A DNA stretch of 64,000 nt, from contig CM074809.1 of NCBI GenBank assembly GCA_037447605.1, forward strand, positions 3,276,689 to 3,340,688. The letters are read 5' to 3'. The translations under genes were made by a program, and so were the position numbers. The first letter of the stretch is position 1. The number at the start of each line of letters is the position of its first letter. This document shows, piece by piece, positions 37,176 to 57,408 of the stretch. This stretch comes from Zygnema circumcarinatum SAG 698-1b (taxonomy: Eukaryota > Plantae > Zygnematophyceae). A model generated the notes under the pieces. That model was not told the origin of the DNA. It did no database searches and saw only the letters and a list, made by a program, of their open reading frames with translations.

Positions 37176-37358
37176 ATGGCTAAGCCCTTTGCCTCACGTG
37201 CAGGCCTTCCCTTGCAAACTCGGAACTATCTTGTAGCCGGTTCCTTGGCGCTGTTCGTAGGGGGCGTATATGTCTACACTATGCGAGCGGTAGGTGGGCA
37301 GGATGACATAGGGGATGCGGTGAAGCGGCTGGAATTGAAGGAGGATAGCACCAAATGA
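37176..37358 (+). CDS. COA3: Cytochrome c oxidase assembly factor 3-like small mitochondrial membrane protein (60 aa)
   Basis: RNYLVAGSLALFVGGVYVYTMRAVGGQDDIGDAVKRLE: a single TM helix followed by YTMRAVGG.D and a short coiled segment, as in plant COA3/Coiled-coil-56 homologues. Good start context GCCGCCATGG. Confidence 0.8.
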   Translation: MAKPFASRAGLPLQTRNYLVAGSLALFVGGVYVYTMRAVGGQDDIGDAVKRLELKEDSTK

Positions 37359-38094
37359 GGCGTGCAGAAGAGAAAGGAGCTGACATCAGGGGTTATCAGT
37401 AGTTTTATGTTTAGGCTGTGCAATCTGCGGTCTGCGAGGGAGAACGGCGGGAATCTTCGGATGGAAGTGAGGAAAATCTCAAGATATAGTGGTGACTTTG
37501 GAGGTCGAACGCGCGTGTTTGCGGTCGATTTATCTTTTTGTTTGGTGAGCATCTGATCTTTAACGCAAAATGTCGAATAGCTTATTGTCAGCAAAACGAA
37601 GAGTCTTCTCTGTTTTGTCGAGAGCATGCTGCAGGAAGTGAAGGGAAGTGATTGCCTAGAAAGTTCTAAGTGGTGCGCATTCCTTATCAGGATACGGATT
37701 TCATCTGCTTCCTTTCTACGTCTATTCAAGTGTATGCCGCATTTGGAGATGCACGTACTCTGTTTGCAGAGAGGTTCCTGTGGATATTGTGTTTCTTCCA
37801 GATATAACGTTCGCTGATTGGACTGCACTGAATTTATTTTATTGTTCGTCAGGTTGCAGGAGACATTAATGAAAGCAGCAAGACATTCTAAGCTGATTTA
37901 TCCATGGCGAATGGCTAGAAACTGCTGCATAGGATAGGTCCGCCGTATCGCGAGACTGATTTACGCTTGCATAAGGACTTAGACTATTTTTACTCAAAGC
38001 AACGGACTAGAAGCCTAAAATATTGAACCATTCAATGTTCGGTTGTTCCAATATTCTGCTTAAGCTGAAATCTATTTGGACATGTTCATTGATT

Positions 38095-38240
38095 CGCAAC
38101 CATAAGAATGGTTGGCAACTATTGGACGTCCAATGGATGCGGCCAATGGCAATGGTTGATTGGGTCCTACGCCAATGGTTGGCAACCATTGGCGTCCAAT
38201 GCTTGCAGTCATTGGCAATGGTTGGTCCAGTGGTCCGGCC
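38095..38240. repeat. Second CCAATGG/CCATTGG palindrome array, downstream of COA3 and inverted relative to the upstream one
   Basis: Contains CCAATGGTTGGCAACCATTGG (~38172); the reverse complement of 38108-38240 aligns loosely with 36410-36510. Confidence 0.72.
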
Positions 38241-38998
38241 TTTTCAATGTCGTCAAACTCCCCCTTTTCAAGACAAGTCTACTCCAAATTTTGGCTCCCA
38301 ACCAGAAAACCAGAAGTCAATTCTGGTTGAGCAGCTATAGGGTTTTTGCTGAATTTCTTGCAGTAGTGAAACATTACATTCAAAAGACTATACATCATCG
38401 TCTATTTTTCAAAAGAGTGACCTTCGACTCATGAGAGGAAAGATAATCGCCAACCTGTGTTTTTTTCACATATGGAACCCATCGCCTTTGACTTGCCATT
38501 TATTCCAGCTTTCCAGACGGTTCTACTACTCTTATTTCCGCACTAAAATGGAAATAGCCCTACGAGCCGCTCAATGCATGCGCATGCAATGTGAATCTAT
38601 CTATGGTCATTCCTCTAAAGACTGCTCGCTGCCAAGGTAAGAAGAGCACATGGGAGCACATGTACCCCATTTATTCAGTTTCCCTACTTTGCCTGAAGCC
38701 CATAATCTCGAATTCTCCGAAATAATCGATCAACAAAGCAATTCAATAGTGTACAACCTAACGCAAAAAAATCATGAATTGTGTCGTTCGCTGCGCATGT
38801 CCCATTTTCTGTAGCCAGTGCAGCAGCTACGTTCCCTTCCCTCCTCCTCGCCCCACACCGCCGCCGCGAACCTTATGCGAAACCAAATGAAATGGGACCC
38901 CTCCAGTCTGCCCCCCCTCAGATCGCTCCCCAACCCTTCCTATTACACTCAAATTTCTTCCTCTTCCTTTTCCCCCCAGCGCCTGAAGCTGAAGGGGG

Positions 38999-41949
38999 TC
39001 ACATGACCCCCTGCGTGGCCGCGTGCGCCTTGAGCCGCGCCAGCGCGAGGCGCGTGTCGGCGAGCCGCGAGTCGAACTTGGCGTGCAGGTACTCCGTGGC
39101 GCCCAGCTGCACGTGGAGGTCCGCCACGTGGGCGGGCAGCGAGGACAGGGCCGAGAACCGAGGCGACTTGGGCGGAGTCGCATACCTCGGAGAAGTCGCA
39201 TAACTTGGGGTCGCATTACTGGGCGACGCGTATCTCGGCGACGTCGCATATCTCGGCGACTTGGGCGGTGTCGCATAGCGCGATGACGTCGCATGCCTCG
39301 GCGTCGCATAACTCAGCGTCGCATTACCTGGCGACGCCGAATACCTCGGCGACTTGGGCGGCGTCGTATAGCGCGGGGACGCCGAATACTTGGGCGACTT
39401 GGGCGGCGTCGTATAGCGCGGGGACGCCGAATACTTGGGCGACTTGGGCGGCGTCGCATACCTCGGTGACGTCGCATGTCTTGGCGACGCATTACTGGGC
39501 GACGCATATCTCGGTGGCGTTGCATACCTCTGCGACCGCGACCCGGGCGTCGGGGGCTGGGGAGACCTCGACCTGCCCGAAAAACTTTCCCGCCCCTGCC
39601 CGTAATACCCACTACCCGACAAATCCGGCGGCCCGCCCTGTCCGTACACTGCGTCCTCCCACGAGTCCCTCCGTACGTGCCTCCTCGAGCCGGGCGAGAG
39701 CAGGCCCCCCAGAATCGCACCCTCGCCAAGTTGCCCTCCCCCGCAAGACGACGGCCCTAATCCGTACCGCTCGAGGCTCCCCAGGCAGCCCCGGCTCCTC
39801 CCCGCAAAAGGCGCCGCGTACCGCGCCTGCTGCTCCGCGTCCGCCTCGCGGCCTCTCCGAAATGGGCTCCGACTTGGCGCCCGTTCAGAGGGCTGCCAGC
39901 CCTCGCACGGTACTCCTTTTGGACTCGCACTCGGAATCAGGATCGGCGGCCGCCGGTCCCTTGCAGTTGCATCTTGCGCGCATGCCAGCCGTCGATCACT
40001 ACTGCATGGGATCATCTGCGACCGTCGATCTTGGCAGTCGGCGAGGTACGTGCCCGCCGTGAGCAGGCCGGCGGAGGGCGTCTCCGAGCCGTCGGCCTCC
40101 CACGAGTCCGCATCGGAGGCGGAGAGGGAGGCGGAGGAGCCCTCACGGCCAATCAGAGCGTTCCGCGTCAGCTCCACCGGCCAATGGGAGGTCTTCACGC
40201 CGCTTTGGAGCACAGGGCTCGGACATGGCGGGGCACTCCTCCGCTCGGGGGTGCGAGGCAACGCGGAGGAGGAGGGCCTCTCCCACTGCAATAATAAAGG
40301 TGAATAAACTAATAATCATCAGCACAAATTCATATGAACAGCCGAAAAGACAAAATAAAAAATAAATTAAAAAACGCAATGCCCCAAATCACCTAAAACA
40401 CGCTCTTGAAAAACATGAAACCCTACCTGAGGTTCTGGAATGACTATGCATGGGCGAATAGAGGGGCTGCGCGGCTTCCTTCCACCTCCGTCGGCCATGG
40501 CTGCCCCCCCCTTGCTGGGCTCCTCCAGCTCTAACCGCCCTATCTCCTCCACCACGCTGTCGAAGGAGAGAAGCTTTCCTGAATCTGCCTCTGAGGAGGG
40601 CCGGTAAGAGGCGCCAGGAGAGATGAGACCCGCGTCGAAATCGAAGGGGCTGTCGGGGGAGAGCGTGCGGCGGGGCTTGGGGGAGGAGCTGGGAGGGAGG
40701 TTGAGGGAGAAGGGGAGAAGGAGGTGGTTTGCGTGGGAAGCGCTTGTGGGAGAGGGCGGAGGGTAAAGGGGAGCGGAGCGGATGAGCAGCCGCGGGAAGC
40801 GGTTAACGAGGAGCTGCCAGCTGGCATGGGCCTCCTGCACCACTTTGAGCGCATTTTCCCTACTCGCCACTCTCTCGTTCAATCCGAACACATTCGGAGT
40901 ACCATCTGTTTCCATTACACAAACAGAAAACTCGCTGAGTTCACATACTACAACAAGAGATGACAGAATGAAATGCAACACATAGTACCGAAAAAAAAAA
41001 CGATCTCGTCACCATGTTGAGATTCCTAGCGAGATTTGAACTCACCACCTCTGCTGCAGCGACACATGCGCAGCCATTCCCGTAACCGTTCCGTTATGCC
41101 CGGCAGCACGCTCGGCAGATCGACCGCACTCTCCACCAATCCCGAGCACGCATCGTCCGCCCTAATCGCCAGCACCTTCCAGGAAAGTTCCAGCTGCCCC
41201 ATGCTCCTGTCAAACTCTATGAGAGCGAAGGCGCCAAGAACCTTCGCGGCGTATATCTCCCCTACCCTCGCTTCCCTTGCGCCTATCTCCAACACTTCCA
41301 TGGGTCTGCCATTGTATGGGAGCCCCCCATACTCAAGATTTGGGAGCTCCGAGTTCGCCCAAGTCTGCGGCAGCATTCCGTAATTACATGGAGCCCCCGT
41401 TGAGAAAAGGGAGGGTTTAGCTCCTGCCGCTCTGACCCTGAACCCTCCCCTCCCGCAGCCCCTGCGCGTTCCGATCACTCCTTCCAGCTCGCCTTTCCCT
41501 GCAGCACCAGGCGGAAGCTTCCCGGAAAATTCTACCTCCGAACGGCTTCCAGATACTCTGCCGCCTCCCTCCCCGCCCTCTCCCTCCTCAATAGACGCGC
41601 ATTCAAGCTCTACATACGCGCCACGTGGCGTCTTGCAGACCACCGTAATCAGAGAATCCGAGGCATGCAGGGGTAGGCCGTGGAGCGGCGAGATTTCCCA
41701 CCCCTTCCTGTCAAGGAAGCGCATGCAGTAGCCGGGCGTTCCATTCGCTCCGTTATCAGTTACCCGTGAAACTTCATTGAGCAGCGGCGACACGTGGCGC
41801 GACCCCGAATGCCGCGGGAGGCTCCCGCTGCTGCTCTGAGAGCTGGAGGAAGCTTCTCCGAAGCTGCTGGCCAAGCTCGTGAAGGAGTCGGTGTCGAGGC
41901 TGGGGAAGCGGAGCGGGCCCGAGTCCGTCTCCCACTCCGAGTTCCCCAT
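38999..41949 (-). CDS. Family-I soluble pyrophosphatase-like pseudoenzyme fused to a long disordered S/T-P repeat tail and a C-terminal helix (~889 aa; exons 41949-41046, 40905-40427, 40285-38999)
   Basis: PPase fold motifs EISPLHGLPL, CNYGMLPQTWAN, PMEVLEIG, KVLGAFALI, WKVLAIRADD, LPGITERLREWL and, across intron 1, RGD|GTPNVFGLNE...ALKVVQEAHASWQLL. Both introns are GT-AG and phase-consistent (1 and 0). Start is the first in-frame ATG after the microsatellite. Confidence 0.85.
39165..39530 (-). repeat. Coding tandem repeat (45-bp core unit) giving YSASPRYTTPPKSPK-type peptides
   Basis: GACTTGGGCGGCGTCGTATAGCGCGGGGACGCCGAATACTTGGGC is repeated exactly at 39351 and 39396, with diverged copies on both sides. 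Confidence 0.92.
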
Positions 41950-41980
41950 CTCTTGATTCGCCACGTGTCGCCAGGGGAAA

Positions 41981-42330
41981 TGAGCGAGAGAGAGAGGGGA
42001 GAGGGAGAGGGAGAGGGAGAGGGAGAGGGAGAGGGAGGAGGGAGAGGGAGAGGGAGAGGGAGAGGGAGGGAGGGAGGAGAGGGAGAGGGAGAGGGAGAGG
42101 AGGGAGAGGGAGAGGAGAGGGAGAGGGGAGAGGGAGAGGGAGAGGGAGAGAGGGAGAGGGAGAGGAGGGAGAGGGAGAGAGGGAGAGGGAGGAGGGAGGG
42201 AGAGGGAGGGAGAGGGAGGGAGGGAGAGGGAGAGGGAGAGGGAGGAGGGAGGGAGAGGAGAGGGAGGGAGAGGGAGAGGGAGAGGCAGAGGCAGAGGGAG
42301 AGGGAGAGGGAGAGGCAGAGGCAGAGGGGA
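41981..42330. repeat. ~350-bp (GGGAGA)n-type purine microsatellite immediately upstream of the pseudo-PPase ATG
   Basis: Seen directly; it is a TC-rich tract on the gene strand, probably 5' UTR or proximal promoter. Confidence 0.95.
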
Positions 42331-43346
42331 GCAGGAGAGCGAGTCCTTCCGGGAACGTTTCTTTCTCTTTAGTGGCACGCGCTGCGGCGCGGAGGGGCCG
42401 GGACTTTCGTATGGTACGGACGCGCCCGCCGGGACCGGGCGGCAGCGGGCGCGCCGGCGCCATCAAGGGCGGATCCGCGCGCGCATCGGACGAGATCGGC
42501 GATCCGAGGGGCTGTGTCGGCAGCGGTGGTCGGTGGGTGTCGGTGGTGTCGGTGAAGGCCGGGGGCGAGGGAGCGGGAGCCACGTGGCATCACGAGGGCC
42601 GATGAAGACAACGGTTTTGTGGACGGACGCCATGTGAGAAGCGTTGACCGGCAGGAGGGAGTGACACGTGGAAAGTGAGGTGACGTGGTACAAGTGGACG
42701 TTTTTGGTTGCTGGCGTTATCGGCATTTAGGGTGCTACGTTGCTGACAGACTGGCCTCAGTTACTGAAACGCTTGCCGCCAAAAGCTGTCGGGAGAAGGA
42801 TCGACGGCTGAGAGGCGATCGCGGGGCTGGAAACTTGTTTGGCATTTTTTTTTCCCACAGAAAACGACGCGCTGCTGTTGGCAGGACGTTGACGTGCGTA
42901 CAGTTTCTACCTGATAGTCTGAGACTAATACCTACCGTACGGTTTTTTTTTTTTTTTTTTTCAGAGGCAAGCCTGCTTCTTCTCTTCTCCTTCGCTCGTG
43001 TTAGGTTGCNNNNNNNNNNNNNNNNNNNNNNNNNNNNNNNNNNNNNNNNNNNNNNNNNNNNNNNNNNNNNNNNNNNNNNNNNNNNNNNNNNNNNNNNNNN
43101 NNNNNNNNNTCAGCGGGGTCGCTGTGGGGAGTCATCCGTGTCGCCCGAACTCCACGTCCCCTTTCACACCTGCCCTGCGAGTCTTGACACTTTGGGATTG
43201 ACGCGCGCACCCTCACCTACCCGCCCCCAACGGCTTCTCTCTCGCTTAATTTGATACTTTTGAACGGTTATCGCCTTTGTGCTTGATCGTGTTGCTTTTG
43301 CACGGGCGGTCACTCGGTCCCCCCATTTGTCTGCTGGGGGGCCATC

Positions 43347-46300
43347 TGTTAGTGTATAGTAGTTAGTCACTAGACAAGTTGTTGTTGGTAGATCAATTTG
43401 TGTGCCTAGGTTGTAGTGGCCTTGTGTGATGACTGGCCAGATTTACTGGGCTGTGGCATTGACTTTGGTTGGTGGAGGCTGTGGTCAGTTAGATTACCAG
43501 ACTACTACTATTTTTGAATGTGATGTGGTTGCTACGTGGATCCTTGGAGTGGATCCACATGCTATGATGGCGCTAAACCTGCTGTGGGAATCCAAATAGT
43601 GACGCTGCTGCGCTAGCCTTTGGACTGCTGATTTGCGCTTGGCGCCAGTGGCGCCAGACTTGTCGGCGCGTGACATCAGGTTGTACGGAGCTGCGTCCAT
43701 GTTTGGTGGCGTGGAGACGACGCGAGAGGACCGACGCGCCATCGATCTTGGAGGCAAGGTCAGATCCTACGGCGCAAGACGTGGACCGGATGGAAGACTG
43801 AGTCGGATCTGACGGGGCTGATGTACGGGATCCGTGTAAGTCTACTAGGATCCGACGGCGCAAGATGAGGATCGGGATAGGGCCCTTGCAGGCCGCTAGT
43901 CGATGTTGTGGAACATCGTTGCAAGATGTCACGTGTGTAGTGACATACATTTAAGGACTTGTTTCCTTGAAGGCAGAGCAGTTCATTCAGGCCGCCCAGA
44001 GTTCTGCCACGCTCGTCTCGTGCGCGACACTTACATGACCTCGTGCTGTGAGGTAGTGAGCTGTGAGATTGCTGAGCGTTCATCCCAGTGGAGACCCCCC
44101 AATGTATGAGTGAATTCACTATTAAGGGATTTTAGCCAGGAGCTTTCTCCTATTCATTTCTCTCGCTATTCCGCTGTGCATTATCTGCGCTATTTATCCT
44201 TAAGAGTGGCTACGAGTGAATGTGAGAGATTTGAAGATGTCATCGTCATTGCACGCGACTCTCCGATGGAGGGTGACCCAATGAGGAATCGGACGGCAGC
44301 AGCTGGAAGGAGTCCCTCCACCAACAAGTGGTATCAGAGCTCATGGAGACTCGGAGGACCACGTCAAGTTCAGCATTCCGGCCTTTGATGGGCAGGATTA
44401 CAAGGCGTGGAGATGGAGGTTGGTTCCCCTGCTTGTAGGCAAGGGGTTGCTTGGGTATGTTGATGGCAGCATCAAGGCGCCGGAGTTACCGGTTGGAGCC
44501 TCAGCGGAGCAGCAGTCGGAGCACGACGTGGCGCTCGCACGATGGAAAGCCAAGGACAACAAGGCCCTGACGCAGATTGTAATGAGCGTTAGAGGAAGTC
44601 CGTCCTCTATGCTTTATGATCTGAAGACCTCTCATGCCATGTGGAGATGCCTTGAAGAAATGTATGATGTAAAAGACAATGTGACGATCGTCAGTCTTTA
44701 CACGCAGCTAGGCAAGATGAAGATGACTTCAGATGAGAAACTAGAAGCTTATATGGTCAGGTTTGATGCTCTGATGGAGAGGTTCATAGCCCTTGGGAAA
44801 CCATTAGAGGCAGACCATAAGATAAGCCAGTTTCTAGGGGGTTTGACCAGTAGATTCGATGTGGCAGTGGCGGCTTTGAGGACAGTCCTGACTAATACCA
44901 CGATGACTCTTGAGCAAGTCAAGCGTAGGATAAAGGAGGAGGACTCCATTCAGGCGGTCGGCAGCCCTGAGGAGAAAGTGCTTGCGTTGCACACTCGACC
45001 GAATCGAAGAGGAGGCGCCTCGAAGTCAGCCCGAGGAGAACGCTCGGCGATTACGTGTTATACGTGTGGCAAGATCGGCCACTACTCCAGCGATTGCTTC
45101 AAGAACAGAGGCAGCCAAGAGAAGGGAGGAAACGCGACTTCATCCAGCAAGAAGGAGAAGAAGGCGTTCAGTGGCACTTGCTTCAAATGCAAGAAGAGAG
45201 GCCACAGGAGTTCAGACTGCAAGGTAGCAGTTGAGAACAACCTCATGCTGGCGGAGAATACTGAGAATGCGTTTGTTGGAAGGATTCAGGAAGAGGATCC
45301 GAAGCGGCCGTGGCTGATTGATTCCGGCGCTTCTACGCATATGTGCGGAGACACATCGATGTTCTCCAAGCTCGACGACTTGAGAAGACACGCTCAGTCC
45401 ATTCAGCAACCGGTGAAGGAGTCACCGTGACGAGAGGTGGAGCCGTGAGGATGGTACTCGGAGACGGCTCGGTCATCAATGAAGAAGACATACAAGAGAA
45501 GTTGTCAATTGGTGACGTTCTTCACACCCCTGAGCTAAAGCAGAATTTCATGTCTGTTAGCCAAGTGTGTAAGAAAGGATACAGTGTTCTGTTTGAGGAG
45601 AAGTCATGCGTGGCCATCCATACAGAAACTGGGAGACAGCTGTTTAGGGGTTATGAGAGAGGAGGGCTGTATTATCTTGATTATAAGAGGGAGAATTATG
45701 AGCATGCCAATGCAATCTCAGAGAATGCCGTAGATGTATGGCATAGAAGACTTGGTCACTTACACCATAGAGGAATGCAGCAGTTGGCTGCGAAGGGGTT
45801 AGTCCGTGGGCTAGACCCGGGTGTAGTGGAGAAGGAGCTTGGGTTGTGCCAGGAGTGTGTGGAGGGCAAGGCGCACAGGAGACCATTCGTGAGGAGTGGA
45901 GACGAGTCCTATCGAGCGCGAGAAAAGTTGGAATTGGTACATTCTGACTTGTGTGGCCCAGTTACACCGGCGACCAACGGCGGAGCACGTTACTTCGTCA
46001 CGTTCCTCGACGATTACTCGAGGAAGATTTGGATTACGCTCCTCAAGAACAAGTCAGAGGCTTTCGGAGCCTTTCGAGATTGGCTGAACCAGGCGGAGAC
46101 AGAATCAGGACAGAAGCTGAAGGCTTTGCGCTCAGACAATGGCGGCGAATTCAAATCGAAGGAGTTCGCAGAGTTCCTGAAGAACCGCGGTATAAGGCAT
46201 GAATTCTCTGCCCCCTATTCCCCTCAGAGCAATGGAGCAGCTGAGCGAGTGAATCGGACATTGGGGGACATGGCTCGGACCATGTTGATTGATTCCCCCT

Positions 46301-48109
46301 TTCCAGCTTCTTTTTGGGGAGAAGCGGTTTCTACTGCTGCGTACATTAGAAACAGATGTCCGTCTTCTGTTCTGAAAGACCAGGTCCCTGAGCAGATGTG
46401 GAGTGGGAGGAAGCCCACAGTTTCCCACCTGAGGACCTTTGGCGCGCGATGCTGGGCTGCACTGCCCAAGGCGCGACAGAAGAAGAAGTTTGACCCCCGA
46501 GCGGTGGAGGGTTATGTTCTCGGCTATAACACCAACAGCCGCACGTATAGGGTGTGGAACCCTCGACTGCAGGAGGTCCTGAGCACGAGGGACATTACAG
46601 TTGATGAGGGAAGTGCTGTTGAGCGTGTTGCAGACTCTCAGATCTTTCCTCCAGCGAAAGCGGATTTCGAGATCGTGTATGAGGAGGGAGAGACGAGTGG
46701 AGAGCGTGATGTCACTGTGCAGGATGCCAGCACATCACAGAGTGAAGGAGCCGAGCCAGCAGCTGCGTCAAGCGAGCCTGCTGATGTTGGAGAGTCGCCA
46801 GAGGAGGCGCATGCGGAGGAGCCGCAGAATTCGACGGAGACGATTCCAGTGCACACTCAGTTGAGTGAGGAAGAGGAGAACTCCGTGGAGACGGTGCCGC
46901 TGCACACGCAAGAGTCAGAGGACCTTGAAGCGGCCGAGAGAGAGGCTATGTTAGCTAACATGCCTCCAGGTTTTGTACCCGGACTCTACTTCTATCCGAG
47001 AGGACGAAGCGCGAAGGAGATTCGGAAGAGCAGTCGGGACAGGAGGCGACCAGATCGGTACTCGCCTGAGAACAACCTCATCCAAGAAAGAGTGCCTTCA
47101 GATTCAGCTGACCTCGTGGGAGTTGCCCATTGCTTTATGATCACGGAACCACAGACCTTTGAGGAAGCACACGACGGAGTCGATGGCGACAAATGGCGGG
47201 TGGCGATCGATAGCGAGTGGGACAGCTTGATAGAGAACGGCACGTGGAGGTTGGAGGAGCTGCCTCAAGGGAGGCGAGCTANNNNNNNNNNGGCCAACCA
47301 GAGTGATTGGCTATACAGACTCAGATTGGGGCGGTGATGTAGATACATCGCGCTCGACTTCAGGTTTCATTTACCTGTATGGAGGTGGAGCGATTTCGTG
47401 GAGCTCCAAGTTGCAGGACTCGGTAGCGTTATCGAGTACAGAGGGCGAGTACATGGGTGCTTGTCATGCTGCAAAGGAGGGCGTGTGGTTTCAGCAGTTC
47501 TTTGATGAATGCAAGAGAGAACAACGCCCGATTACCTTGTTCACCGATAATCAATCATCGATTGCCCTGGTGGGAAACCCGGTGTTTCACAAGCGGACCA
47601 AGCACATCAGAGTGCAGTACCATTATGTACGGGAGTTGGTTCGAGGAGGGTTTGATCGATGTGAAGTTCGTAGGCACGAAGGAGCAAGCCGCCGATATGC
47701 TGACTAAAGGAGTTAGCGGAGAAACCCTGCTGGTGAATGGCAGGTTGGTTGGGCTGGGGCCCATGCAAAACTAAAGTCCCAAAGAGGGGGATTGTTAGTG
47801 TATAGTAGTTAGTCACTAGACAAGTTGTTGTTGGGACATTAGTTTTGTGTGCGTGTGTTGTGTGTGTGGCCCTTGGCGGCGATGTGCGCCTAGACCGACG
47901 GGCNNNNNNNNNNAGGAGCTTTCTCCTATTCATTTCTCTCTGTTATTCCGCTGTGCATTATTTGCTGTGATTCACTCTGTGAGTAAAATGGGCTATGAGT
48001 GAATGTGAGAGATTTGAAGATGTCATCGTCGATTGGAACGCGAACTCCGATGGAGGGTGACCCGAATGGAGGAACGGACGGTAGCAGTGGAGGAGTCCCT
48101 CCACCAACA
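43347..48109 (+). mobile_element. Ty1/copia LTR retrotransposon copy 1, full length (5' LTR 43347-44326, 3' LTR 47793-48109 with an internal gap, TSD CCATC)
   Basis: LTRs run TGTTAGTG...CCAACA; PBS TGGTATCAGAGC (tRNAiMet) at 44329-44340; PPT AAAGAGGGGGAT at 47781-47792; CCATC at 43342-43346 and 48110-48114. Confidence 0.95.
44345..47774 (+). pseudogene. Copia gag-pol of copy 1 (Gag with two CCHC knuckles, protease, integrase, RT largely hidden in a gap, RNase H)
   Basis: CYTCGKIGHYSSDC and CFKCKKRGHRSSDC; WLIDSGASTHM; WHRRLGH...CQECVEGK; VHSDLCGP / RSDNGGEF / NGAAERVNRT (DDE); GYTDSDWGGD, SSTEGEY, TDNQS, KHIRVQYHYVRE, ADMLTK. Order PR-INT-RT-RH is copia. Frameshifts near 45380 and 47650. Confidence 0.93.
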
Positions 48110-48528
48110 CCATCCGGCATGGCTTATGAGTTATTTTGTGATGTGTTCTCTCCCGATACGAGCGAGGGTGGATTTGATTTGTTCTTTTAGCTTGCTTCCA
48201 TCATTGCCCAGGGTCGTGTCCCGGTGTTTATTAGTCATCTCTTTACTTCGGCTCGTCTCGTGGCTCTCGCCAAGCCTGTCGGCGGCGTTCGCCCCATCGC
48301 TGTGGGGGAGGTTTTGTCTCGTGTGGTTGCTCGTGCTATGTGTTTGCAGTTGCAAGGGGCTTTTCAGAATCATTTTTCCCCTTGTCAATTTGGTGTCGCA
48401 AAGCTGTCGTCCATGGTATTCGAGTGATGCTTGACCTTCATCCGGATTGGGTGGTTTTACAGGTTGATGTGACAAACGCTTTTAACAAAAGCCCGTGAGG
48501 AGATGTTTCCAGAGTAGCGCGAGGCTCC

Positions 48529-49576
48529 TGTTAGTGTATGATAGTTAGCATGAATTTGTTGGAACATTAGTTTTGCGGCTTTTGTGTTGTGTGTTTTCTT
48601 TGGCGGCGGTGTGCGCCTAAGTTGTAGGCGGGAGTACGGACATTGGTCGGTGGAAGAGGCGCGGCGCGGCGGAGTCAGAAGTGACGAGGCGCAACGCAAC
48701 GAATCGGAAACTGACGTGGCGCGAACGCGGCCGCGGAGCGAATCGAAGATGTGACGCGACGTGCGAATTTGCGCGCGAATCAAAAGTGACGCGGCGCGGC
48801 GTCAACCTTTGGATTNNNNNNNNNNGTCAACCTTTGGATTGAACGATTCGGACTTGACGCTATGCGGCGTCAGAATATCGGCGCGCGATTCATCATTGTA
48901 CGGAGCTGATTCGAAATGTCGGTGGCGTGCGACGACGCGGAGTTTGACGTGTCATCTATCTTGGAGGCAGGGTCAGATCCTACGGCGCAAGACGTGGATT
49001 AGCTTAGAGTCCGACTTGGATCTGACGGAGGTGATGTACGGTATCCGTGTGAGTCGACGAGGATCCGACGGCGCAGGATGAGGATCGGGATAGGGCCCTT
49101 GCGGGCGGCTAGTTGATGTTGTGAGCTTCGTAGCATGGTAGTGTCACGGATGTTGTGACATAGTATATAGTGTGTTGTTTTGTTTGGTTGTTAATCTTTA
49201 ACTTCTGGATTATCAACGTAGTTATTGTAGACTCTGAGAAGCTGAATGCTCGTGTTGCTTAACATTACACTTGCTTGTGCTGCGAGGTAGTGGGCTTTTG
49301 AGTTTATTGGGCTATTTGAGAGGGGGTCTCTCATTTGTGTTGATAAGATTATTATTAAGGAGTTTTAAGGCCGAGAGCTTTCTCCTATCCTTTTCTCTCT
49401 GTTATTCCGCTGTGCATATTCTGTGAGGTTCACTATGTGAGTAAAATGGGCTATGAGTGAATGTGAGAGTTTGGGAAATGTCATCATCGATTGGAACGCA
49501 AACTCCGATGGAAGGTGATGAGAGTGGAGAAGCCGGCCGGCCGGCCGGCGACCGTGGAGGAGTCTCTGCATCAACA
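48529..49576 (+). mobile_element. Solo LTR of a second copia-related family (TSD GCTCC)
   Basis: TGTTAGTGTATG...TCAACA, with GCTCC at 48524-48528 and 49577-49581. It contains an N gap, so a hidden internal region cannot be excluded. Confidence 0.82.
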
Positions 49577-49617
49577 GCTCCTGCACCTATCGCCTCTATT
49601 TTTCCCTTTGTTAGTGC

Positions 49618-51086
49618 TGTTGGAGCATGGATCTGCTGGCTGCTCCCAGCGCCACCTCGCGTGTCGCCCTCCATTGGAACTCCGGTTCCCACCGATGAAG
49701 ACATCTTCACTCTATCTCACTTCACTCATAGCCCATAACTCACAGAATGAACGCAGAGACGAGCACAGCGAAAATCACACACGAGAGAGTATAGGAGAAA
49801 GCTCACGGCTCTAAAACTCCTTTATAATAAGAATGTCACCCACATNNNNNNNNNNGTCAACCTTTGGATTGAACGATTCGGACTTGACGCTATGCGGCGT
49901 CAGAATATCGGCGCGCGATTCATCATTGTACGGAGCTGATTCGAAATGTCGGTGGCGTGCGACGACGCGGAGTTTGACGTGTCATCTATCTTGGAGGCAG
50001 GGTCAGATCCTACGGCGCAAGACGTGGATTAGCTTAGAGTCCGACTTGGATCTGACGGAGGTGATGTACGGTATCCGTGTGAGTCGACGAGGATCCGACG
50101 GCGCAGGATGAGGATCGGGATAGGGCCCTTGCGGGCGGCTAGTTGATGTTGTGAGCTTCGTAGCATGGTAGTGTCACGGATGTTGTGACATAGTATATAG
50201 TGTGTTGTTTTGTTTGGTTGTTAATCTTTAACTTCTGGATTATCAACGTAGTTATTGTAGACTCTGAGAAGCTGAATGCTCGTGTTGCTTAACATTACAC
50301 TTGCTTGTGCTGCGAGGTAGTGGGCTTTTGAGTTTATTGGGCTATTTGAGAGGGGGTCTCTCATTTTGTGTTGATAAGATTATTATTAAGGAGTTTTAAG
50401 GCCGAGAGCTTTCTCCTATCCTTTTCTCTCTGTTATTCCGCTGTGCATATTCTGTGAGGTTCACTATGTGAGTAAAATGGGCTATGAGTGAATGTGAGAG
50501 TTTGGGAAATGTCATCATCGATTGGAACGCAAACTCCGATGGAAGGTGATGAGAGTGGAGAAGCCGGCCGGCCGGCCGGCGACCGTGGAGGAGTCTCTGC
50601 ATCAACAGCTCCTGCACCTATCGCCTCTATTTTTCCCTTTGTTAGTGCTGTTGGAGCATGGATCTGCTGGCTGCTCCCAGCGCCACCTCGCGTGTCGCCC
50701 TCCATTGGAACTCCGGTTCCCACCGATGAAGACATCTTCACTCTATCTCACTTCACTCATAGCCCATAACTCACAGAATGAACGCAGAGACGAGCACAGC
50801 GAAAATCACACACGAGAGAGTATAGGAGAAAGCTCACGGCTCTAAAACTCCTTTATAATAAGAATGTCACCCACATNNNNNNNNNNGGACCGCACTAAGG
50901 GTCTGACGCGGTTCCGCCGACATCACCGACATCCTCCGCGCCCGAAAAGCGTACGGGCCACCGACATTTGGCCCGACCGTATTTCCTAGGAACACTACTA
51001 GCAGATCTCATGTTTCCCAACTGAGGACCACAACAATGTTAGTGTGAACCCGTACAATGTCTAACTATAGCACACTAACACTAACA
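49618..51086 (-). mobile_element. Reverse-oriented LTR (solo or gap-collapsed element) of a third copia-related family (TSD AGTGC)
   Basis: The minus strand runs TGTTAGTGTTAGTGTG (51086) to CCAACA (49618; 50649 in the duplicated block). AGTGC lies at 49613-49617 and 51087-51091. Confidence 0.78.
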
Positions 51087-51441
51087 AGTGCTTTATTATT
51101 TTTATTCTCGCTCGAGCCCTCTCCTTTTCCCTCTTGGCGGTACCAGCAGTTTTCTTAGCACTCTCGAGTCTGCCACAAGGACGCGCTAGGGCGATCCTTT
51201 GGGGGGTCCATTATTCGCTTTGGCACACCTTTGTAGCGAAACGCTATAGATCGGTTGTATGGCCTAGTACTTACATCCATGGTTGCCTTTTAATGGTAAA
51301 GCACATGTGTGGGTACCGGGAGGTCCTGTGTTCAAACGCTCTTGAGGGCGGGTTTATTACAATGGTATCAGAGCCTAATTCCCGGTATTTGCGATCCACC
51401 CTAAAAACACCGTGATCTCTGAGCATGGTACGGGGTTCCAA

Positions 51442-52901
51442 TGTAACAAACCCGCCTCCAGCAAGGTTTGATCTCAGGACCTCACGGTATTCACCTAAGT
51501 GCTTTACCATTAAAGGCAACCGCGGATGTAAGTACTAGGTTATACACTCCATGTATACTGTTCATTACATTCCTCCCCACCTAAACCGTGCTCGTCCTCG
51601 AGCACCATGCTCAAGGGTTTTTACGAGCGCGTTCAAGCTCCTTCATCATATGGACCTACAGACTTGGCTGCCACAGCTCAACCAATCTGTACCATGCTCA
51701 GAGATCACGGTGTTTTTAGGGTGGATTGTGTTGATGTATAGGTACATCAAGGTGTTGGTACTTAGTTCCTAGCATGGATGTTGTCCAAGAGATCATGTGT
51801 TGATGTAGGGGCAATGTCATGCATGAATGGTCATGTTTGGTGTAGGACCAAACATGGGGGATGCCCAAATGTTAGGGCAATGTACGGAAGGTCTAGGGAA
51901 GGTCTAGGGTCGTAGATTTACGGCTTAGGCTGAGACCGTACCAAAGGGGGTGCGCTGGATGCGCATTAATTGGTCTGGAGCGTGACCGTACGGACGGCNN
52001 NNNNNNNNGTCACGTGACAAAGGCCGCCATGGTATATGAGGGAGCAAGCTTGGCTCCCTACTTACTCACTCACTCGGAACGTTATGCTGCTCAACCTTCG
52101 TGTTAGGAAGAGTAGGCAGAGGCTGAGGCCTTGAGGAGTCCGGCCTTGTGTAGGGGGTCGTGAAAGAACTATCTCTCATCATGGTTAGCTCTAGTGAAAG
52201 AGTTAGAGATGTGTCCCTCTCGTGTTGAGTTAGAGGAGAAGTTCAAGCAAGCATATAGTGCTTAGCTACTACAGTTGGGGTGTAAGCTGCCTATCAGTGG
52301 ATAGGGTAGTGCTCATGAGAGAAGGAGAATCGAGCATAAGGTTATATGTAGATTTCCTAAGAGAGCTTGTATTACACCTATGAATGTTAAGGAGTTTTAG
52401 GGCCGAGGGCTTTCTCCTTATACTTGTGTCATTTGTCACATGTGAGTCCTTGTGTTGGATTGGAGTGATGGATGAGTGGAGGCGAACATTGTATGGGCGG
52501 TGTGTCGCATCACATGTGGAGACCATTGGAGGAGCGTGGAGCTGAAGGAGCCAAGACCATGGAGGAGATGAAGAAGTGTTCTTGTAGGTGGCGCGTTTTG
52601 TTTTCCGCTGTGCGCACCTGGTGAGGGGAGGAAGAGAAGGCATATCGTGGCGGAAGCGGTATGTGGCCTAAGTAGAAGTGGAAGAAGTTTTAGAGTTTCA
52701 CTAAAGCATGTTTTATCCTTCCACTAGTCTCTCTCTACTGCCCCCTCACACCAACAGATTGCAAATACCGGTCCTTAGGCTCTGATATCAATGTAACAAA
52801 CCCTTGCCTCCAGCAGGATTCGATTTCAAGTGCTTTACCATTAAGAGGCAACCGCGGATGTAAATACTAGGTCATACACTCCCTGTATACCGTTTGTTAC
52901 A
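51442..52901 (-). mobile_element. TRIM-2 (diverged subfamily) inserted in reverse into TRIM-1; LTRs 51442-51569 and 52792-52901
   Basis: Reverse-strand LTR/PPT (TTCCTCCCCAC at 51570) and PBS (GGCTCTGATATCAA at ~52778-52791); same internal sequence as TRIM-1 and TRIM-3. TSD not clear. Confidence 0.82.
51729..52756 (+). mobile_element. Solo LTR of the large-LTR (LARD-like) family inside TRIM-2 (TSD GATTG)
   Basis: TGTTGATGTATAGGTACATCAAGG...CTCACACCAACA, with GATTG at 51724-51728 and 52757-52761. Same LTR as at 57409 and 62185; shortened by an N gap. Confidence 0.88.
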
Positions 52902-53850
52902 TCGAACCCTTACTGGCCTGAGGGGCTAAAGCCGTAGTCCATGTGTTGAAAGAGCTTGAACGCTGCTCGTGAAAACCCTTGAGTGCGCTCAAGGACGAGC
53001 TCGATTTACGTGGGGAGGAATGTAGCAAAATGCTATACATCGGTTGTATGGCCTAGTATTTACATCCGCGGTTTCCTTTTAATGGTAAAGCACATGTGTG
53101 GGTACCGGGAGGTCTTGTGTTTGAACCCTCCAAAGGGCGGGTTTATTACACCTTCGTGCGCTTTGGGCGTCTGCACAGGCCTTTTTAGGGTGCCTTTTCC
53201 CTTCGGTTGCTGATGATACTCACATTCTCTACCTTGTTGATCAGGTGGTTGCTGCTTTTACTGATTTCAGTACTCGGCTGGCTTCCTTGCAGCTTACTGT
53301 CAATTTGTCCAAATGTTTTGCTTGGTCTCCAGTTGGTCTCCCCTCTTCCCTTTCGCTTTCGTCGGGTATACAGACTTGCTCGGACGCGATTGGTATCCGC
53401 GTCCTTGGTTGCCCTTTTGGGGCGTCATCATATGTTGATCGTTTTGTGGAGGATGCTTTGGTTGAGGATGTGTCTCAAGTTGATGAGTTGCCTCATCTTT
53501 CTGATCCTCAGGTGGCTTTTTCCTTACTCGTTGTTTTGCCTTACGTCCCTCTTACCTTTTACGAACCCTCCCTCCTACCGTTGCTTTTCTCGCTTCCTTG
53601 CAATCTTTCGACGAGCATTTATTTTCTGTGTCATCGCCTTTTAGGTGCGAGTATTTTTGACCGGCCGGAAGGCCCGCTTGCTCGTTTGCAAGCCTCGCTT
53701 CCTATTCTTGGCGGTTAGGGGCTTGTCCCAACTACGCGGGTTGCATCCCCGGGCTTTTTGAGTAGTTGGGCTCTTGTTGCTACGGTGTTAGCTTCGCGTT
53801 TCCTTGTGGATGATCGTCCGTTGCTTCAGTCCGTTGTTGCTCATGTTGAT

Positions 53851-54247
53851 TGTAACCAAACCCGCCCCTGGCAGGGTTCGAACACAGGACCTCCCGGTAC
53901 CCACACATGTGCTTTACCATTAAAAGGCAACCGCGGATGTAAGTATTAGACCGTACAACACATGTATAGCGTTTCGCTATATTCCTCCCCACCTAAACCG
54001 TGCTCGTCCTCGAGCACACAACTCAAGGGTTTTCACGAGCTGCATTCAAGCTCCTTCAACACATGGGACGATGTACGGTTCAGACCTTTTGGCCAACCGT
54101 ACCATGCTCGGAGGTCACGGTGTTTTTAGGGTGGATCGCAAATACCGGGAATTAGGCTCTGACAGGCCATGTAACCAAACTCGCCTCTGGCAGGGTTCGA
54201 ACACAGGACCTCCCGGTACCCACACATGTGCTTTACCATTAAAAGGC
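53851..54247 (-). mobile_element. TRIM-3, reverse orientation: 3' LTR 53851-53981, internal region 53982-54169 (188 bp), 5' LTR from 54170 interrupted by copia copy 2
   Basis: Same LTR, PPT and degenerate PBS as TRIM-1. This copy shows the uninterrupted internal domain and the best-preserved GTTCGAACC box. Confidence 0.88.
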
Positions 54248-57200
54248 TGTTAGTGTATAGTAGTTAGTCACTAGACAAGTTGTTGTTGGGACATTAGTTT
54301 TGTGTGCGTGTGTTGTGTGTGGCCCTTGGCGGCGATGTGTGCCTAGACCGACAGGCGGCGGTACAGACTTTGGTCGGTGGAGAGAGCGGGCGCGCGGAGC
54401 CGAAGTGACGAGGCTGACGTGACGATTTGAAATGTGACGGGCGCGACGCGACGCTGAGCGTAATTGAAGATGTGATGCGACGCCAAACCGCGCGTAAATT
54501 TGAAGTGACGCGGGCGCCGCGCCAGCCTTTGGATTGGCTGATTTGACTTGCCGCGGCGGGCGCTGCATTGTCGGGCGCTACGCTGATTCAGAATTGTACG
54601 GAGCTGGCCAATTGTCGGGTATGCGGAGACGACGCTGGTGATTGACGCGGCTATCTATCTTGGAGGCAAGGTCAGATCCTACGGCGCAAGACGTGGATTG
54701 AACGAAAGGCTGAGTGGATCCGATGGAAGCCAAGAGCTGGATCCGTGTGAGTCTACGAGGATCCGACGGCGCAGAATTAGGATCGGGATAGGGCCCTTGC
54801 AAGCTGCTAGTCGATGTTGTGAAGCTTCATAGCATGTTGTCACGTGTGAAGTGACATTGTATTTAAGGATTGGCTTTTGTTGTGTAGGCTAATTCATTCA
54901 GGCTGTTGTAGTCTCTGTTATGCTGTTTGCTCGTGTTGCAACACTACACTTGCTCGTGCTGCGAGGTAGTGAGCTGTGAGATTGCTGAGCGGCCGATTTG
55001 AGAGGGGGTCTCTCAATGTATGAGTGAATTCATTATTAAGGAGTTTTAGAGCCAGGAACTTTCTCCTATCCTTTTCTCTTTGTTATTCCGCTGTGCATTA
55101 TTCTGTGAGATTCACTCTATGAGTAAAATGGGCTATGAGTGAATGTGAGAGAGATTTGGAATGTCATCATCGATTGGAACGCGAACTCTGATGGAGGGTG
55201 ACCCGAACGGAGGAACGGACGGGAGCAGTGGAGGAGTCCTTGCACCAACAAGTGGTATCAAAGCTTATGGAGACTCGGAGGACCACGTCAAGTTTAGTAT
55301 TCTGGCCTTTGATGGGCAGGATTACAAAGCATGGAGATGGAGGTTGGTTCCCCTGCTTGTTGGCAAGGGGTTGCTTGGGTATGTTGATGGCAGCATCAAG
55401 GCGCCGGAGTTACCGGTTGGAGCCTCTGCGGAGCAGCAGTCGGAGCACGACGTGGCGCTCGCGCGATGGAGAGCCAAGGACAACAAGGCCCTGACGCAGA
55501 TTGTAATGAGCGTAAGAGGAAGTCCGTCCTCTATGCTATATGATCTGAAAACCTCTCATGCTATGTGGAGATGCCTAGAGGAAATGTATGATNNNNNNNN
55601 NNAGATGAAGATGACTTCAGATGAGAAACTAGAAGCTTATATGGTCAGGTTTGATGCTCTGATGGAGAGGTTCATAGCCTTGGGGAAACCATTAGAGGCA
55701 GACCATAAGATAAGCCAGTTTCTAGGGGGTTTGACCAGTAGATTTGATGTAGCAGTGGTGGCTTTGAGGACAGTCCTGACTAATACCACGATGACTCTTG
55801 AGCAAGTCAGGCGTAGGATAAAGGAGGAGGACTCCATCGAAGATGTCGGCAGCCCTGAGGAGAAAGTGCTTGCATTGCACACTCGACCGAATCGAAGAGG
55901 AGGCGCCCCGAAGTCAGCCCGAGGAGAACGCTCGGCGATTACGTGTTATACGTGTGGCAAGATCGGCCACTACTCCAGCGATTGCTTCAAGAACAGAGGC
56001 AGCAAAGAGGAGGAAACGTGACTTCATCCGTCAAGAAGGAGAAGAAGGCGTTCAGTGGCACGTGCTTCAAATGCAAGAAGAGAGGCCACAGGAGTTCAGA
56101 CTGCAAGGTAGCAGTTGAGAACAACCTCTTGCTGGTAGAGAATACTGAGAATGCGTTTGTGGGAAGGATTCAGGTAGAGGATCCGAAGCAGCCGTGGCTG
56201 ATTGATTCCGGCGCTTCTACGCATATGTGCGGAGACACATCGATGTTCTCCAAGCTTGACAACTTGGAGAAGACACGCTCAGTCCATTCAGCAACCGGTG
56301 AAGGAGTCACCGTGACAAGAGGTGGAGCCGTGAGGATGGTCCTCGGAGACGGCTCGGTCATCAATGAAGAAGACATACAAGAGAAGTTGTCAATTGGTGA
56401 CGTTCTTCACACCCCNNNNNNNNNNTGCCCATTGCTTTATGATCACGGAGCCACAGACCTTTGAGGAAGCACACGACGGAGTCGATGGCGACAAATGGCT
56501 GGTGGCGATCGATAGCGAGTAGGACAGCTTGATAGAGAACGGCACGTGGAGGTTGGAGGAGCTGCCTCAAGGGAGGCGAGCTATTGGCTGCAAATGGGTC
56601 TTCAAAGTCAAGAGGAAGGCAGACGGAAGCGTGGACAGGTACAAGGCGTGGCTAGTGGCGAAGGGATATGCCCAGCAGTATGGGGTTGACTACATGGAGA
56701 CGTTCGCTCCAGTGGTAAAGTTCAATTCCTTGAGAGCCTTGATTTCCATCGCAGCGGCTGAAGGAATGCATGTCCATCAGCTGGACATCAAGACGGCATT
56801 CCTGTACGGAGATCTAACGGAAGAGATCTACATGGAGCAGCCGGAGGGGAAGGTGGTCCCAGGAAAGGAACACCTAGTCTGTCGACTAGTGAAGAGCCTA
56901 TATGGTTTGAAGCAGGCGCCTAGAGTGTGGTATGAGAAGATAGATGATCTTCTGAGGAGGAATGGTTTCGACCGATTCGAAACAGATCATTCCGTGTACC
57001 GTCAAGGAGAGGGGGCGGACATCATGTTCGTCAGGATCTACGTCGATGATCTCATAATGGTGAGCCTCTCGCTTGAAAGAATCAGTTCCTTGAAAGAGTT
57101 GCTTCAGGCAAACTTCAAGATGTCAGATTTGGGGGAGGCGCAGTATCTGCTTGGAATGCAGTTGAAGAGGGGGCAGGATGGCAGCTTATTCTTGTGTCAG

Positions 57201-57408
57201 AAGAAGTATGCATCGGATATCCTTGCCCGGTTCCACATGGAAGATTCTAGGCCATGCTCCAGCCCGATGGAGGTAGGCGCTAGATTGTCGAAGGAGATGT
57301 CACCTTCGAGTGCAGCAGAGGCGCAGAAGATGTTCGGAGTGCCTTATAGGTCTGCGATTGGGAGTCTGATGTACCTGATGATTGGAATGCGTCCGGATCT
57401 GGCGAAAG
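54248..57408 (+). mobile_element. Ty1/copia copy 2 (5' LTR 54248-55250, PBS, gag, protease, gap, RT), interrupted at 57409
   Basis: Same family as copy 1. RT ORF 56529-57408 has IGCKWVFKVK, YKAWLVAKGYAQQYGVDYMETFAPV, HQLDIKTAFLYG, LVKSLYGLKQAPR, IYVDDL and YRSAIGSLMYL. Frameshift near 56010. The 3' end is outside the window. Confidence 0.93.

Follow-up and report, generated by a model that had tools for sequence, protein, structure and literature searches.

A gene on the minus strand of a 64,000-nucleotide stretch of the Zygnema circumcarinatum SAG 698-1b genome (assembly GCA_037447605.1, contig CM074809.1, positions 3,276,689 to 3,340,688; hereafter the window, to whose numbering all coordinates refer) was analysed, following a first-pass annotation that had described a catalytically dead pyrophosphatase domain fused to a long disordered tail. 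The gene, located between 41949 and 38999, is probably (at a probability of roughly 0.7) intact, expressed and part of a large, lineage-specific pseudo-pyrophosphatase family derived from a eukaryotic-type family I inorganic pyrophosphatase (PPase), in which the head would be non-catalytic and the tail regulated by phosphorylation. Family I PPases are textbook housekeeping enzymes. The evidence that carries this reading is the precise splicing of the transcript, the replacement of most active-site residues in a head predicted to keep its fold, and the existence of a large clade of relatives with a shared remodelling.

Gene structure and the remodelled head

The open reading frame (ORF) listing and the RNA contigs revealed three exons, 41949-41046, 40905-40427 and 40285-38999, which give a coding sequence of 904 + 479 + 1287 = 2670 nt, corresponding to 889 amino acids and a stop codon. 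Contigs of X2, X3 and X5, three runs of one 2025 study, omit exactly 40906-41045 (intron 1, 140 nt, phase 1) and 40286-40426 (intron 2, 141 nt, phase 0). Both segments are GT..AG on the minus strand, and the exon boundaries therefore follow from these exact intron-less contigs. The contig pieces of X1, a run of a second study from 2019, were of low depth and all within exons, and one of them began at 41046, the very edge of exon 1. The gene is transcribed and precisely spliced, and the intact, cleanly spliced frame of about 889 residues described in the first-pass annotation was borne out, each of its two introns being exactly skipped in contigs of three runs. The first exon encodes residues 1-301 and the first base of codon 302; the second encodes the end of the PPase fold (GTPNVFGL...ALKVVQEAHASWQLLVNRF), followed by a Pro/Ser-rich linker; and the third encodes residues 462-889 of the tail and the stop codon TGA at 39001-38999. 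The earliest in-frame ATG is at 41949-41947, and the N-terminus (W-E/D..SG....D.F.S..SS) is similar to that of the relative P0001. A single C>A difference, either an error or a strain difference, was seen at position 40193 of exon 3 in the X1 contig, at a depth of 2.

Protein searches were done exon by exon, with 41047-41949, 40427-40903 and 39002-40285, all on the minus strand. Exon 1 matched the Pfam profile PF00719 with 50.2 bits (cut-off 23.5; E 3.1e-13) over profile positions 31-120 of 153, and phmmer against the PDB returned 25 PPase sequences at E<=0.01, the best of which was the acidocalcisomal PPase of Trypanosoma brucei (5c5v; E 1.7e-17), with yeast Ipp1 at 5e-13. On these scores, the PPase homology of exon 1 is far beyond chance. 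The domain is carried onward by exon 2, which showed 63% identity over 52 aa to P0003, a relative of 978 aa; the Pfam scan of exons 2 and 3 gave no match, and neither did the PDB sequence search with exon 2. As a whole, the family I pyrophosphatase-like domain covers about residues 63-338 (40796-41763, minus strand) and is split by intron 1.

Structure prediction of residues 60-301 with AlphaFold2 (AF2), based on a family alignment of 107 rows, resulted in a mean predicted local distance difference test score (pLDDT) of 85.6 and a predicted template modelling score (pTM) of 0.81, the model being poorly defined only at residues ~120-169. When the head model was compared with the PDB by Foldseek, the top matches were all eukaryotic PPases, including the human (6c45), T. 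brucei (5c5v/5cuy) and yeast (1wgi) structures, with a probability of 1.0 and TMq values of 0.64-0.73. The ESM Atlas structure search led to a Streptophyta PPase cluster (TM 0.76, root-mean-square deviation 1.4 over 192 residues), while the ESM Atlas feature search yielded ordinary PPase clusters only, at a recognition level under the reliable range. NYGMLPQTW, SWKVLAIRADD, VFGL and ASWQLL are retained as structural motifs. Together, the model and its matches indicate that the head (~residues 63-338) retains the PPase fold. The first-pass annotation had likewise assigned the N-terminal part to eukaryotic family I PPases and listed NYG.LPQTW, WK..AI..DD, FGL and W..L as kept; both statements agree with the profile match above its cut-off and with the superposition of the model on human, trypanosome and yeast PPases. 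The poorly defined residues 120-169 (41443-41592, minus strand) form a loop that consists of an acidic/Gly-rich insertion and then GELEGVIGTRRGCGRGGF, a motif with 17 of 18 residues identical in P0003.

In family I PPases, three to four Mg ions are held by Asp/Glu residues, and phosphate is held by K56, R78, Y192 and K193. Thirteen canonical polar residues (E48, K56, E58, R78, Y93, D115, D117, D120, D147, D152, K154, Y192 and K193, in yeast numbering) were scored twice, by hmmalign to a hidden Markov model of 19 active matches and independently in a MAFFT alignment (A2), and the results agreed. In A2, each of the 45 active sequences has all 13 residues. The pattern of the window protein is K E E S Y N R E E S K C R, with identity at three of the 13 sites. 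The ten replacements include all five metal-binding Asp, and three of them are conservative: E48 is replaced by K106, K56 by E114, R78 by S180, D115 by N213, D117 by R215, D120 by E218, D147 by E245, D152 by S256, Y192 by C296, and K193 by R297, with charge swaps at E48K, K56E, and D117R. The retained residues are E58 (E116), Y93 (Y190) and K154 (K258).

Considered by motif, YNGRPME (41296-41316, minus strand) replaces the metal-binding GDNDPxD (D115N, D117R, D120E), as found by HMMER, hmmalign and MAFFT, and N213-G-R215-P-M-E218 departs from the metal-binding signature D-x-D-P-x-D, the PROSITE PPASE pattern. According to the alignments, DEGExDWK is replaced by EFDRSMGQLELSWK (41176-41217, minus strand), with D147E, D152S, K154 kept and an insertion of six residues. 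In addition, MAFFT and the family comparison placed C296-R297-C298 (41056-41064, minus strand) at Y192-K193-x. Because the metal-binding Asp and most of the phosphate-binding residues are replaced, the head very probably cannot hydrolyse pyrophosphate (PPi) by the known mechanism.

The substitutions read by eye in the first-pass annotation (E48K, K56E, D115N, D117R, D120E, D147E, D152S with an insertion, and YK to CR) were recovered by HMMER, hmmalign and MAFFT alike, and R78S (S180; hmmalign and MAFFT) is additional to them. The insertion is present as six residues at the D152S site, but part of what had appeared to be inserted is a conserved motif that had been missed. The broader proposal of a pseudoenzyme, with the fold kept and catalysis lost, is favoured by the ten of 13 residues replaced, by the pLDDT of 85.6 and by new residues conserved family-wide. 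Two candidate placements were rejected along the way: hmmalign set AGKGELE, after the loop, as the K56/E58 strand, where the AF2 strands and MAFFT A2 place GAYVELE; and R171 was considered as the equivalent of R78, a position at which both alignments set S180. R171 is a family-specific conserved Arg (PLR).

A clade of degenerate relatives

An exhaustive phmmer search with exon 1 against 1.84 billion cluster representatives (clusters at 50% identity) revealed 849 proteins at E<=1e-3, of which 228 reached E<=1e-10. Among the best 150 representatives, the 13-site score was bimodal: active enzymes carried 13 of 13 residues, with fewer only if truncated, and about 66 representatives were degenerate, keeping 0-3 of the five Asp. 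Phylogenetic analysis of 129 domain sequences with FastTree grouped 62 degenerate representatives, including the window protein, into a single clade that contains no active enzyme (support 0.84 for the degenerate clade and 0.98 for the active side). Within it, the window protein groups with P0003 (53% identical) and P0005 (553 aa, 47% identical) at a support of 0.92. Substitutions related to those of the window protein, for which the first-pass annotation had proposed a search among orthologues, are in this way found in at least 62 cluster representatives of one clade; that the gene is one of many paralogues is a point additional to that annotation.

The clade has conserved motifs of its own, namely VC.TP.G.W, PLR, PWN.G.LPQTWA, D..PLEV..IG, GEVY.VKPLGAFAV, LSWK..AIA.DDP and LPG.LE.IREWLR.C.C. 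At the former active-site positions, E48 is replaced by K or T in 43 of 61 family members, D120 by E in 44, D152 by S in 38 and Y192 by C in 36, while K154 is kept in 52 and E58 in 50; D115 is still Asp in 31 of the 61 and Asn in the window protein. The latter has the shared derived residues K106, E218, S256-W-K258 and C296-R-C298, and keeps 40 of the 49 positions at which the others show a conservation of 70% or more, the 11th lowest value of 62 (median 0.86, minimum 0.69). By this comparison, the window gene is no outlier within the family and shows no sign of drift away from it. Since a large monophyletic family shares the remodelling and has conserved residues of its own, the sequences argue that the gene is not a decaying pseudogene.

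Tails of at least 200 aa are present in at least 30 family representatives. The members named by organism are five from Mesotaenium endlicherianum (JGI Mesen1 models ME000420S07042, ME000124S00201, ME000565S08349, ME000311S05214 and ME000191S02480) and four from Closterium sp. (NCBI entries), which are all among the algae closest to land plants; the others are Trinity or Logan transcripts, and a range restricted to Zygnematophyceae is a statement on the named members and not a demonstrated range.

Tandem arrangements of PPase domains were also observed. P0004, from an NCBI contig of 18,685 nt, has 5113 residues and about 20 tandem pyrophosphatase-like domains, all degenerate (e.g., E48 is replaced by K/T, D120 by E and D152 by S, K154 often being retained), and it falls outside the main degenerate clade in the tree. 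P0011, P0025 and P0144 have two to four tandem PPase domains, each of which retains all five Asp and, overall, 11-13 of the 13 active-site residues.

The tail and the proposed function

The tail comprises about 550 residues, and the part encoded by exon 3 is basic, with a pI of 10.2 and an abundance of S, P, A and R. AlphaFold prediction of exon 3 alone gave a pLDDT below 50 at residues 1-383 and one helix at residues 384-424, corresponding to residues 845-885 of the protein (39014-39136, minus strand). The long disordered tail of the earlier description is consistent with this profile, with which the composition agrees. There are 30 Ser/Thr-Pro sites in the tail, eight of them fitting [ST]Px[KR]. 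The segment of residues 700-845 has 14 Tyr, 22 Arg/Lys and zero Asp/Glu, and contains ten SP[RK][YF] motifs in tandem repeats of 45 nt (15 aa; 39162-39536, minus strand), with units of the type SPRY(A/T)TPPKSP(K/R)YSA. Two adjacent units are identical in DNA, and the X2 and X3 RNA contigs are one unit short at 39348-39392, due to either assembler collapse or a copy-number allele. A short Trp-acidic motif, SWEADG (40088-40105, minus strand), is also found in the tails of P0003 (EWESADG) and P0005 (PWESAGG), and a second copy, DSWEDA, is located farther along the tail.

The predicted C-terminal helix showed 55% identity over 44 residues (E 4e-12) to the extreme C-terminus of P0003, whereas the ~450 residues preceding it could not be aligned with that protein, which argues for selection on the helix. 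Word-index protein searches with the whole of P0003 and with its C-terminal 64 aa found no further helix-bearing relatives, and the window protein itself was absent from their results and seems to be missing from the collection searched. A word-index search with exon 1, limited by its length window, gave two hits.

In the reading that we prefer, the head would be a stable non-catalytic binding or assembly module, its pocket possibly closed by pairing of R215 with E218/E245, and the regulated work would be done by the disordered tail. The latter may serve as a multi-site platform for proline-directed phosphorylation that recruits partners or self-associates, as suggested by the Ser/Thr-Pro sites, the SP[RK][YF] repeats, the Trp-acidic motifs and the conserved helix taken together. 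Several points weigh against this reading. The RNA check compared public runs of the same organism with 38700-42400, and its evidence consists of assembled contigs. Disorder of the tail was predicted from a single sequence, which is weak evidence, together with the agreeing composition, and phosphorylation of the tail is suggested by motifs only. An amphipathic or coiled-coil character of the helix was unsupported, the hydrophobic moment being no higher than that of shuffles. Finally, compared to P0005 (L001), the only relative with DNA, the nonsynonymous divergence (dN) was 0.36-0.48 and the synonymous divergence (dS) was saturated.

The alternative that survives best, although we consider it unlikely, is that the head is a ligand sensor, whose pocket binds an anionic phospho-ligand without metals or hydrolysis and relays its occupancy to the tail; phosphate, PPi, polyphosphate, inositol phosphate or a phosphopeptide, perhaps of its own tail, would be the candidates. 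The pocket, which was metal-filled and carried a net negative charge, becomes roughly neutral or positive, with K106, R215, K258 and R297 opposite E114, E116, E218 and E245, and the frequent retention of K154 and E58 in the family, as well as the gathering of family-specific conserved residues around the old active site, would fit a binding role. However, K56, R78, Y192 and K193, the residues that classically bind phosphate, are exchanged in the window protein and variable across the family, and the Arg at the D117 position may just form salt bridges with the remaining acids, thereby shutting the pocket. A bolder version, for which we see only slim odds, takes the head as a newly evolved sensing module and more than an inert scaffold, with the remodelled pocket, including the Cys-x-Cys and the Arg at D117, binding a metal, a redox signal or a phospho-ligand. 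On this view, the family would have undergone an expansion, in the algae nearest to land plants, into signalling or condensate-forming proteins that are controlled by phosphorylation and linked to the stress biology of these algae.

It is still less probable that the dead head forms heterodimers with an active family I PPase that it tethers, inhibits or relocates. The fold is well kept according to AF2 and Foldseek, many pseudoenzymes, to which the head may be likened, act on active paralogues, and eukaryotic family I PPases are dimers. Nevertheless, dozens of divergent paralogues exceed what is needed for the control of one housekeeping enzyme, and Trp52, an interface residue in yeast PPase that lies beside the conserved Arg51, is Gly110 in the window protein. 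A new chemistry appears very improbable; here the conserved Cys residues (C105 in VC.TP; C296-x-C298) would form a new metal, redox or catalytic site, making the head a different kind of enzyme or a redox/zinc sensor. The dead clade indeed conserves C-x-C and VC.TP, which active enzymes lack, and 36 of 61 representatives have Cys in place of Y192, but C298 is conserved in only ~50%, and C105 lies directly before the E48 position on a beta strand and probably faces the core. The least credible alternative, a non-functional relic in the form of a transcribed, decaying duplicate whose long frame is a by-product of GC-rich, repeat-rich sequence, could draw on the long ORFs in other frames of the same GC-rich stretch, on the Asn at D115 (Asp in 31 of 61 relatives) and on the nine family-conserved positions that differ in the window protein, but is largely refuted by the precise splicing, the intact frame of 889 codons over three exons, a retention of family-conserved residues that is normal for the family, and the conservation of the C-terminal helix and the loop motif with the 53%-identical P0003.

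Surroundings, significance and known systems

The neighbouring genes in the window encode an M50 peptidase, a radical SAM protein and a TPR/HAT protein and are ordinary nuclear genes; within the window, no gene functionally linked to the PPase-like gene was found. Coding regions of Copia-type long terminal repeat retrotransposons (gag with zinc knuckle, integrase and RVT_2) are located upstream of the gene, at 44420-57449. A (GAGGGA)n/(TCCCTC)n microsatellite of ~360 bp (41982-42343) occupies part of the 5' untranslated region (UTR) or promoter and reaches to 33 nt before the start codon; the reading frame stays open through it without an ATG. This microsatellite was skipped as a repeat in the RNA contig comparison. 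At its 3' end the gene is adjoined by a far more deeply covered transcript (37176-38975; X1 depth ~175, compared to ~3 on the gene), and RNA contigs extend more than 1.2 kb below 38700. The sole plausible ORF in 37176-38975 (37176-37358, plus strand) encodes a peptide of 60 aa that probably spans the membrane. The deep transcript at the 3' end and this plus-strand ORF suggest that a small gene converges on the PPase-like gene, its long 3' UTR overlapping the end of the latter.

A full-text literature search revealed no published account of a dead family I PPase family or of a PPase-derived pseudoenzyme family, in line with the earlier remark that the architecture was not recognised from characterised plant proteins. 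In the Zygnema genome paper (Feng et al. 2024; PMC11096116), 'pyrophosphatase activity' is among the Gene Ontology (GO) terms enriched in Zygnematophyceae-specific orthogroups. The degenerate PPase family may contribute to this enrichment, although the term is broad and the connection is a lead only; if the family does underlie the signal, automatic annotation calls non-enzymes enzymes. The text supplements of Feng et al. (2024) had no PPase entry, and the genome papers on Spirogyra and Ancylonema make no mention of pyrophosphatase. Lineage-specific expansions of signalling genes are a central question in the algae closest to land plants, and the family represents a clean case for the reuse of a metal-dependent hydrolase fold. 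What the fold is reused for can be tested directly, as both Mesotaenium and Closterium can be grown in culture and a phosphoproteome of Mesotaenium is available (10.64898/2026.05.21.726866).

The closest comparison is with yeast Ipp1 and human PPA1 (PF00719), with which the window protein shares the fold, homology along the whole domain and the motifs NYG.LPQTW, WK..AI..DD and REW.R. It differs from them in retaining only E58, Y93 and K154 of the 13 residues, with the five metal-binding Asp replaced, and in adding a loop of ~30 residues, the six-residue insertion before SWK and the ~550-residue tail. The acidocalcisomal/vacuolar VSP1 of trypanosomatids (5c5v, 5cuy) likewise joins a family I PPase core to an additional region, but it is catalytically active, and its extra part is a folded N-terminal domain instead of a disordered C-terminal tail. 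Drosophila NURF-38, an inorganic pyrophosphatase, is reportedly a structural subunit of the NURF chromatin remodeller and would be a precedent for the family I PPase fold as a building block of protein complexes; unlike the window protein, it has kept its activity and has no tail, and a link to chromatin is not implied here. The logic of catalytic residues lost, fold kept and a presumed binding or scaffolding role is the same in the pseudophosphatases STYX, the inactive myotubularins and the D1 domain of PTPRU, whose folds and chemistry are unrelated to those of the window protein.

For the tail, the comparison is with the KSP repeats of neurofilaments and the heptads of the RNA polymerase II C-terminal domain (CTD), both of which are multi-site Ser/Thr-Pro repeat tails. 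These are likewise short tandem repeats rich in S/P/T/Y/K/R with proline-directed sites, but the unit in the window protein is 15 aa long (SPRY(A/T)TPPKSP(K/R)YSA), shares no homology with them and has phospho-sites predicted from sequence, among which TPPK fits the [ST]Px[KR] consensus of cyclin-dependent kinases.

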